Source: Octopus bimaculoides
Lineage: Eukaryota
Assembly: GCF_001194135.2 (NCBI RefSeq)
Contig: NC_069000.1
Coordinates: 7,993,087-8,057,086, forward strand
Direction of reading: 5' to 3'
Length of the DNA: 64,000 nucleotides
The notes below the pieces were generated by a model. It had not been told where the DNA came from. It saw only the letters and a list, made by a program, of their open reading frames with translations, and made no database searches. Made by a program: the position numbers and the translations under genes. Shown here in pieces: positions 125 through 2,266 of the stretch. The number at the start of each line of letters is the position of its first letter. The stretch's first letter is position 1.

Positions 125-302
125 CTTCGTCTTGACCATCATCCCTAAGATTGTCATCAGTTGGACAGATGTTTCCTTTCCTTTTGTCTAAAAGAGCTCT
201 TATCCTTTCCCAGGCTAATGCGAAACTTGATGGTTCAACTTCTTGTTCAACACTATCAGAACCAAAGGCGCCCAGGACCAAACCGATGAACAGAAAGAAA
301 AG
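125..302 (-). CDS. Nav2: Nav2 exon: DII S6 second half and start of II-III linker ([35 protein letters not shown]...DDGQDE)
   Basis: Acceptor ttgtttttctag, in frame with ORF 63..281. Donor gtatga at 124 is the best local candidate, so the 3' boundary is less certain. Confidence 0.85.
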
Positions 303-2118
303 CTAGAAAAACAAAGATACATGAGTCTGTAGATAACTGATTGTAAAAGCGTAGAATATAGGTAAAGAAAGATAGTTAATTTTTATCACTATTGTAATCC
401 GTAATTTATAGGAATCAAAATCCATCCATTCACATATTTCAGAGTTGTTGATTAACAAAGCAGTTTTGCCTGCCTTTTATAATAAATGATGGAACATGCA
501 TTTGTAATGAGATTCAAGTGATTTTACACAATTCTATTGTTAGTTATTAACAAAAAAAACAAAAAAAAAAAAAATCAAAGGCCCTTTCTGAGCCAAAGGC
601 TCATAAAGCTGGTTTCTAGGATTCTGTGGGGGATATATTCCTTCCCACTTCACCCACCACCACCTTTAGTTATGCTGGCCTGTGACAGGTTTACTTATTT
701 TTGCTGACTGAGTGAAACGAAGTGGTTTGCTCAAGAACACAGTGTATTGCCCAGCCCTGGAATCGAAACCACAATCTTATGATTTTGAGTGCAACACTCT
801 AACCACTAAGTCATATGCCTCCACGATTAACATAACACTATAAGGTTATTATAGAATATACAAAACTACGTTCATCACATAGCTACAGAAGAAATGTGAA
901 GAAATATTAGTAATTCATAAGTAAAACAAAATCTAGCAATTAATAATATGAAATACAACTAAAAGAAGCAGTTATTGATTATCATTTGGAGGTGTAGCCA
1001 ATCAAATAGTCAGACATTCTTAATATTGCAATTGAAACTGTATCATGTTTCTCCATCTTTTCAATTAATGGGCTGGTTTCTGATAGCTGAACTTTTTTAT
1101 GATAAATCATGTTTTTCTAGCACTGAATGATATGTAAGGTTAAACTTTATACTCTGGAGTGGCTGTATCTTTGAAACACTAGAAGGCAATGATTTAACAT
1201 TCACGAAAGCAAGTAGGATTTCTTCATCACATTGTTTTATCATCTTGTTTGTTTTGATTAAATTATTCAATGGTTTTAAGGTGTGTTAAATATGACATTA
1301 AATTTCACTTAAACACCTATGGAAGTTTACCATGATTGAAATTCAATCTGATGACTTAAATTGGGATAATGAAAAGATTCTCAAGATGGCAGAATAAGAT
1401 ACTCCAGAGAAAATAAAACTCCATTTACAAGGTAGCAAATATTCTATGTTTATAAATGTTTTCTAATTTTGCTGCCTATAGAACTTGTTTTTTGGCATAT
1501 GATTTCATACAAAGCTGGTCTGGCAATATCTTCATGAATTAAAGACAATTCACTACCTCTTTTAGCAAGGTACCATTGATTGTGTCAGGAAGAAATTTCT
1601 GTTAAGTGTTTGGTGGGTCATCATTGTTAATACCGTGGCAAAATGTTCAATCATCTTAAAACTAAGACATTATTATTAACAGCAAGACATTCTCTATGGC
1701 TGTATAAGATTCAAGATTCCTACCCCCAAACAAGTTTTAGTCTGAATTGAAGAAGATTTACTAACAACAACAAAAGAATTATGGCCATTTCTAGTAATGC
1801 TAGTGGATTCTTCCACTTAATCTGTAGGAATGGTAACTTACAATGTAAAGGTCTTCCTAGCTTTATGAAACACAGTAAAGTCACCTTTCAATTAGTTTCC
1901 CTGTCAAATACTCATATGTACTCAAAGACAAACATATTCATATATTTTGCCTGCATTATAATTTTTGTTAAGCTTCTATCTAATTGATGTATGCAGAAAA
2001 AAAAAGGTACCTAAATATGCATAAAGTTAAGAATAACAACTAATCTATATTTTAGTCAACAATAATGTCGGATTTAAAGTGCATTTAATATAGACAGTTA
2101 GAAATCTATGTTACTTAC

Positions 2119-2266
2119 TGTTTTGCCAAACACGGTAACTGGTATGAAGATAAGGAAACAAAGACCATTACAAGCACGCATACAATCATACATGGGTTCA
2201 ATCCATTCTCCACATAAAATTCGAAAGACCATCATAAATGAATGGAGGAAATCATTAAAGTTCCAC
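2119..2266 (-). CDS. Nav2: Nav2 exon: DII pore loop (filter residue E in CGEW) and first half of S6 ([49 protein letters not shown])
   Basis: Acceptor ttttatttcag, donor gtaagt, 148 nt, phase 2 to phase 0. Confidence 0.96.

Follow-up and report, generated by a model that had tools for sequence, protein, structure and literature searches.

The closest described relatives of the gene analyzed here are the Nav2 channels, which include Drosophila DSC1 (NaCP60E), cockroach BSC1, honeybee CaV4 and oyster CgNav2. The gene lies on the minus strand of a 64,000-nt stretch of the Octopus bimaculoides genome (NCBI RefSeq assembly GCF_001194135.2, contig NC_069000.1, positions 7,993,087 to 8,057,086); this whole stretch is called the window, and positions are counted from its first letter. 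The gene shares with the Nav2 channels a clade, the motifs LAQSWxTMR and CGEWIEP(L/M)(W/Y)DCMRA, and an intron position. However, every Nav2 examined reads GNF(I/M)VLNLFLALLLN(S/A)F in the sixth transmembrane segment (S6) of domain II, and the octopus gene does not. As predicted from the genomic sequence, it is a rare natural case of a domain II S6 that lacks both near-universal Asn residues and is one residue short.

Two Asn positions in S6 have been studied in other channels. The Asn that follows the gating-hinge Gly (S6/51; rat Nav1.4 N784, human Nav1.5 N927) is batrachotoxin-sensing, and its Lys or Arg mutants are still functional but batrachotoxin-resistant, with the long positive side chain predicted to lie near the toxin site and the ion path (PMC10940626). 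The second, strongly conserved S6 Asn (S6/56) has been tied to gating and inactivation, and also to many channelopathies (PMC5599482; PMC8758419), and its mutation in NaChBac has an effect (PMC5599482). Tikhonov and Zhorov proposed that this Asn arose as a one-residue insertion, and that the extra residue is absorbed by a pi-bulge, in most cases at S6/51, one turn upstream, which preserves the downstream contacts (PMC8876033). In their view the Asn side chain stabilizes the bulge, and bulges come and go with gating (PMC8876033). A pi-helix with a pore-facing Asn has been described for the open state (PMC8758419).

The NCBI name "sodium channel protein 1 brain(-like)" is carried by Nav2 of Ptychodera, Tubulanus and Patella. 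We take "Sodium channel protein 1 brain" to be the Swiss-Prot name of squid SQSC1, a channel reportedly described by Sato and Matsumoto in 1992. SQSC1 has been cited as a mollusc DEEA, Nav-like channel (PMC3809514). Because of this citation and the shared Nav2 naming, SQSC1 is the likely cephalopod counterpart of the octopus gene. An octopod "Nav2" shows brain expression similar to that of Nav1 (PMC7656900 supplement).

Splicing and sequence of domain II S6

Domain II S6 is encoded by two exons on the minus strand. Exon e4 (2266-2119) carries the domain II pore loop and the N-terminal half of S6, and ends in phase 0 at the donor ACA|GTAAGT. Exon e5 (302-125) completes S6 with its C-terminal half, runs into the II-III linker, and ends in phase 1 at the donor GAAG|GTATGA. 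The intron between them (303-2118) sits at the ancient conserved position GNxx|VLNLF. The e5 acceptor reads tttttctag|CTT; the exon is preceded by tttgtttttctag|, with an in-frame TAG directly 5' of it. Splicing of e4 to e5 through these consensus sites gave the junction ...GGCAAAACA|CTTTTCTTT..., and the whole S6 coding span comprises 2160-2119 and 302-264. To define the possible joins we listed all GT...AG pairs in the vicinity of both exons. Three joins were in frame, each with the acceptor at 302, and the donor at 2119 was the only consensus one. The two non-consensus in-frame joins shorten S6 further, and none of the three restores LNLF; the other acceptor for xxLNLF that had been considered in a preliminary description of this DNA thus did not appear in the genomic enumeration. 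Since 2119/302 is the single consensus in-frame join, we concluded that the spliced S6 given in that description is correct.

Duplicated pore exons are used by invertebrate four-domain channels (NALCN, Cav3; PMC6259924), and the variant S6 could be one of two splice choices, minor or tissue-specific, with a canonical copy of e4/e5 hidden in an assembly gap or outside the window. A gap of 175 N lies between e3 and e4 (3684-3858), and the window continues for only 124 nt after e5. However, a six-frame motif scan of the full 64 kb, the e4-e5 intron included, found no second S6-like exon, and related loci with long flanks showed no such duplication. The anomaly is split over two exons, so that two hidden alternative exons would be required, and we regard this explanation as quite unlikely.

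The S6 read through the 2119/302 junction is 27 residues long, compared with 28 in its relatives. Alignment by phmmer to eel Nav1.4 (5xsy) and human Nav1.7 needed a one-residue gap (GKT.LFFLF vs. GNLvMLNLF and GNLVvLNLF, respectively), with GNLvMLNLFLALLLSSFSSD as the stretch of the PDB relative aligned to the window. One residue fewer was therefore counted between the hinge Gly and LF(I/L)(G/A)L, which agrees with the shortening noticed earlier beside the exon junction. At S6/51 the Asn adjoining the hinge Gly is replaced by Lys (codon AAA, 2122-2124, minus strand). At S6/56, five residues downstream, the strongly conserved gating Asn is either Phe (codon TTT, 294-296, minus strand, in the exon-register alignment) or deleted, depending on gap placement. 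A phase 0 intron at GNxx|VLNLF also interrupts S6 in L001, in L002 and in dozens of animal contigs from metagenomes, among which both Nav1 and Nav2 types occur. The e5 half aligned without a gap at this shared position (to ILNLFLALLLNSFASDSL of L002; relatives read (V/I)LNLFLALLLNSFASDS), and the lost residue therefore falls in the last e4 codons (GKT vs. GNFM), at S6/51-53. MAFFT and hmmalign placed the gap on the Asn column instead. The Asn is absent in either alignment, and the loss of both Asn residues, as first noticed, holds in either gap placement.

The preliminary description had called the N784/N927 equivalent a gating and slow-inactivation residue, and so had merged two positions: N784/N927 is the hinge-adjacent residue, and the strongly conserved gating Asn lies five residues on. 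The S6 hallmark G-N-x-x-x-L-N, with an Asn in each S6 at fixed spacing from the hinge Gly, is lost from domain II. Domain I S6, encoded by the exon 46862-46728 on the minus strand (VIRAHSPWTVIYFIVINFFGSLYLMNLMLAVVASAYELEVKNTGK), reads GSLYLMNLMLAVV and keeps the hallmark Asn (LMNLM), as had been noted. The FxSDS exit motif is preserved, and the altered S6 still has the make-up of a clean hydrophobic helix. The gate-proximal half of S6 reads GLVLG, a GxxxG helix-packing motif, where relatives have ALLL(N/S) (264-284, minus strand).

Errors of assembly or sequencing were also considered. The window is AT-rich (∼33% GC) with abundant microsatellites; together with the repeats and long introns, this composition fits a cephalopod genome but is not diagnostic of one. 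It contains 13 N runs of 10-849 nt and very numerous di- and tetranucleotide repeats, and hence represents a draft, scaffolded assembly in which an artefact could arise. However, the S6 anomaly comprises an in-frame loss of 3 nt and at least eight substitutions, distributed over two exons 1.8 kb apart, and the changes preserve frame, hydrophobicity and splice consensus, unlike sequencing errors. An artefact is therefore very improbable.

Family assignment, conservation and rarity

To place the gene we used the spliced domain II (314 residues) as the query. It gave a full-length match to Pfam Ion_trans (PF00520), which ran from position 2 to position 238 of the 241-position profile and scored 193.5 bits (cut-off 25). 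The closest PDB structures were Nav1 channels, with 407 bits for eel Nav1.4 (5xsy) and 345 bits for NavPaS; Cav3 scored lower. An exhaustive HMMER (phmmer) search of 1.84 billion representative proteins returned 15,035 relatives. The highest identities over domain II, 50-55%, were to Nav2 of Hyalella, Bulinus, Ptychodera, Nymphon, Mytilus and Nucella, and e4 was 62-69% identical to Nav2 proteins in tblastn. The source names of the closest relatives were "sodium channel protein 60E" (DSC1) or "sodium channel protein 1 brain-like", and the most similar domain II relatives bear the pore motifs TLD.WE, TFEGW and TSAGWN, which form the D-E-E-A pattern of Nav2.

Hidden Markov models (HMMs) were built from 20 Nav2 and 18 Nav1 domain II sequences. 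The octopus domain II scored 341 bits with the Nav2 HMM vs. 300 bits with the Nav1 HMM. In a neighbour-joining tree it fell inside the Nav2 (DEEA) clade on a branch of ordinary length. Two Nav2 signatures were found, RLAQSWTTMR in the S4-S5 linker (family KLAQSWxTM) and, after the filter, the gene's version of the family motif EWIEPLWDCMRA; the Nav1 equivalents are KLAKSWPTLN and EWIE(S/T)MWDCM. The domain II Glu of the selectivity filter is visible (CGEWIE), and the outer-ring Glu is intact. Judged by its domain II sequence, the gene is of the Nav2/DSC1/BSC1/NaCP60E ("CaV4") type, with the filter read at the domain II Glu only. HMM scores, tree and signatures all agree with the original Nav2 assignment as far as domain II is concerned.

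Conservation was measured on 45 Nav1 and Nav2 domain II sequences, in which 54 columns were at least 90% conserved. The octopus gene matched 49 of these near-invariant columns, those of the voltage sensor and the filter Glu among them. The five mismatches (N to K, L to F, N to gap or F, A to G, and L to V) all fell in one S6 block of 12 columns. Mismatches thus affected 5/7 conserved columns within the block vs. 0/47 elsewhere (P∼3e-4, with block position allowed for). We concluded that S6 has undergone focal remodelling rather than decay, and general decay or pseudogenization was rejected as the principal interpretation since the changes are confined to S6.

A narrower form of that idea is that pore function has been lost or is being lost and that S6 is drifting, either in an early pseudogene or in a protein retained only for tasks other than conduction, for example voltage sensing or scaffolding. 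Five changes at the most conserved S6 sites, with a bulky Phe and a charged cavity Lys, would be expected to harm conduction, and no exon for the domain I pore was found. Neutral decay, however, should spread, and none of the 47 other near-invariant columns has changed. Stops and frameshifts are likewise missing from the eight exons seen, all of which carry canonical splice sites; the earlier statement that the flanks of S6 are intact is borne out on both counts. The hydrophobic helix and the FxSDS motif are kept, the helix is confidently modelled, and the filter and outer-ring Glu are intact. We consider loss of pore function unlikely, and prefer a gene that is intact apart from a rebuilt domain II S6.

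The rarity of this S6 was estimated with 143 family representatives whose S6 could be aligned. S6/56 was Asn in 130 of them and Ser in eight; His, Asp, Ala, Thr and Gln occurred once each, and an aromatic residue never. At S6/51, Asn was present in 103 representatives and Lys in three. A deletion in the S6/51-56 stretch was seen in P0122, an ENA/Logan contig protein (GG-ILLDLF), and in P0072, where the gap looks like intron read-through in a mis-spliced model. The Asn at S6/56 was lacking in 2 of the 4 representatives with Lys or Arg at S6/51 vs. 11 of the 139 without (Fisher p = 0.04), which hints that, at the sequence level, the two positions may be coupled. GN..LNLF and the intron position were kept in 75 metagenomic animal loci and in ∼40 further Nav2 fragments. 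All bilaterian Nav2 seen, from gastropods, bivalves, arthropods, a hemichordate and a nemertean, read GNF(I/M)VLNLF; the molluscs with this canonical S6 are the gastropods Nucella, Candidula, Bulinus, Batillaria and Pomacea and the bivalve Mytilus. The octopus motif, which might have proved common in Nav2 outside the cephalopods, is thus not shared by these groups.

Known channels resemble the octopus S6 in single features. The engineered mutants rat Nav1.4 N784K and human Nav1.5 N927K and N927R carry Lys or Arg at the same hinge-adjacent site of domain II. These are single substitutions in Nav1, however, with the downstream Asn and the helix length unchanged, unlike the octopus gene. A Trichoplax Nav2-like channel (XP_002110570, P0038; GKLLVLHLF) and a green-alga channel (P0103; GKWIFLTLF) have a natural Lys at S6/51 together with a non-Asn residue at S6/56. 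They differ in having no deletion and in carrying polar His or Thr in place of Phe, and they belong to unrelated lineages. P0122, a four-domain channel, is the sole representative besides P0072 with a one-residue deletion. The gap immediately follows the hinge Gly, and the Asn is missing too, but P0122 carries a polar Asp at the Asn position and is distant and unannotated.

We searched for closer relatives in several ways. Word-indexed protein searches gave nothing closer than ∼55% identity over the bulk of domain II, with 69-72% over one exon-sized stretch only, and the phmmer search of 1.84 billion representatives likewise yielded no closer orthologue. Exact look-up of open reading frames (ORFs) and a peptide-string search of the literature gave no match. 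In metagenome scans e5 had no match and e4 matched 73 loci, all non-orthologous. No cephalopod protein or contig was returned by the protein, ORF, metagenome or peptide-string searches.

Predicted structure and gating

On balance we lean towards an intact four-domain Nav2-type gene, of which the domain I-II part is present here, with domain II S6 alone rebuilt and a working channel as the predicted product. The change may be a coupled reversal, in which the Asn was lost together with one residue at the pi-bulge site. The result would be a bulge-free, permanently alpha-helical domain II S6 with both ends in register. Such a helix would leave the alpha/pi switch and the Asn hydrogen bonds that are tied to opening and inactivation. 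The preliminary description had inferred a register shift; S6 is indeed one residue shorter, but the shift need not be disruptive and may be compensated, as the loss sits at the pi-bulge site and the stabilizing Asn is also gone. The hinge-adjacent Lys should extend into the central cavity, as predicted for Nav1.4 N784K and Nav1.5 N927K, and would add a positive charge there, which is expected to alter cation permeation and inner-pore pharmacology. Altered inner-pore pharmacology is predicted because the Lys occupies the batrachotoxin-sensing position. The replacement of ALLLN/S by GLVLG may tighten or loosen helix packing near the gate. Taken together, these steps would give a functional channel with unusual, domain-asymmetric gating, and a dead gene would not be expected. 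Adenosine-to-inosine (A-to-I) editing in coleoids might, in principle, recode the AAA codon of the cavity Lys.

In the AlphaFold2 model, the derived S6 forms a single unbroken helix that spans residues 214-244, mostly with a predicted local distance difference test (pLDDT) score of ∼87, and 76 for residues 231-240. A canonical gastropod control likewise gave a continuous S6 helix. The structure prediction proposed earlier for S6 therefore returned a continuous helix, but its output reads only "H" and does not separate alpha from pi. Bulge patterns in AlphaFold models are reported to be unreliable (PMC8876033).

Several points weigh against an intact gene with a rebuilt, bulge-free domain II S6. 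The 2119/302 junction is predicted from the genomic sequence alone, and a canonical alternative exon may lie in the N gap between e3 and e4 or beyond the 124 nt after e5. The missing domain I pore exon means that the gene may be incomplete. The window does not reach domains III and IV, and the integrity of the whole gene is judged from domains I and II. The searches returned no orthologue from a close relative against which S6 conservation or purifying selection could be gauged. The alpha-vs.-pi argument is built on a published hypothesis, and experimental Nav1 structures show bulges in S6 of domains I and III, not of domain II (PMC8876033).

A wider reading is that a coupled deletion and substitution returned one inner helix to an S6 like that of potassium channels, with neither Asn nor pi-bulge, and that this state is fixed and functional throughout a lineage, possibly in all coleoid cephalopods. 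We put this forward tentatively and think it somewhat doubtful. A lineage-wide reversion, if true, would be a natural experiment on the alpha/pi gating model, and it could account for unusual gating or permeation of cephalopod Nav2, or for an insensitivity of its inner pore to toxins. The S6 Asn is central to current ideas of an alpha-to-pi helix switch in gate opening, and the gene offers a ready-made test of the functional coupling between the Asn and the extra residue. A change in one of four domains also shows what one domain contributes to gating, and the finding bears on the role of Nav2 in molluscan nervous systems.

Gene model and other features of the window

The channel gene is built of short open exons, and the splice sites of the eight seen are all canonical. 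Domain I S3 to S6 and the entire domain II are present in order and on one strand (minus), and the remainder of the gene lies beyond the window. Introns of 1.8-28 kb mean that two channel domains occupy more than 60 kb. Domain II is encoded by five exons, e1 to e5, joined at canonical GT-AG sites with compatible phases. Those upstream of e4, delimited by tblastn and exon splicing, are e1 (18246-17993), with a Cys-rich pre-S1 stretch and S1 (..CSCCKKCCRCCFTPWMRIQ...KFANY); e2 (8577-8407), with S2 to S4 (VFTSVFLLEALLKI...GVSVFRSFRL) and intact gating charges and countercharges; and e3 (7116-6923), with the end of S4, the S4-S5 linker and S5 (LRVFRLAQSWTTMRLLL...EPVP(R)), which holds the Nav2 signature LAQSWxTMR.

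Upstream of the domain I S6 exon, we recognized an exon for the domain I S4-S5 linker and S5 (59110-58898) and one for S3-S4 (60651-60542; ..GLRTFRVLRALRTLSIIPG). Sensitive tblastn on the minus strand of 46863-58897 revealed no domain I pore-loop exon, which would be expected to encode ...F(Q/R)L(I/M)T(L/Q)D.WE.... This exon may be hidden in an assembly gap (N runs 53571-54037 and 54994-55132) or absent. The domain I S6 exon ends in phase 0 at the consensus donor AAA|GTAAGT (46723-46728), and e1 opens in phase 1 (18246-18247). This mismatch may reflect unrecognized I-II linker exons within the 28-kb intron; alternatively, use of a second donor 4 nt downstream (A|GTAAAA) may give a very short I-II linker of ∼35 residues. 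Just ahead of domain II S1, e1 encodes the Cys cluster NCSCCKKCCRCC (∼18150-18200, minus strand), which is less pronounced in Mytilus Nav2 (NCACCSK); the cluster may serve for palmitoylation or metal binding.

ARAGORN and Rfam scans of the whole window detected no intact tRNA or RNA family. The e4-e5 intron contains, at ∼700-860, a repeat-like element with a tRNA-like head (GGTTAGAGTG...GGTTTCGATTCC). A separate dispersed repeat occurs in both orientations, at 25186-25371 and 63364-63528 on the plus strand and at 54385-54639 and 62480-62779 on the minus strand. Its translation contains ...NWYLIYRP(R/H)K(D/N)ERQS.PW(R/Q)NLNSE..., and it reads as an element of the host genome resembling a short interspersed nuclear element (SINE). 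In a large intron, the open stretch ..LFPGTRLISDRWASYVGLENF.. at 9537-9755 (minus strand) looks like a fragment of a DDE-type transposase.

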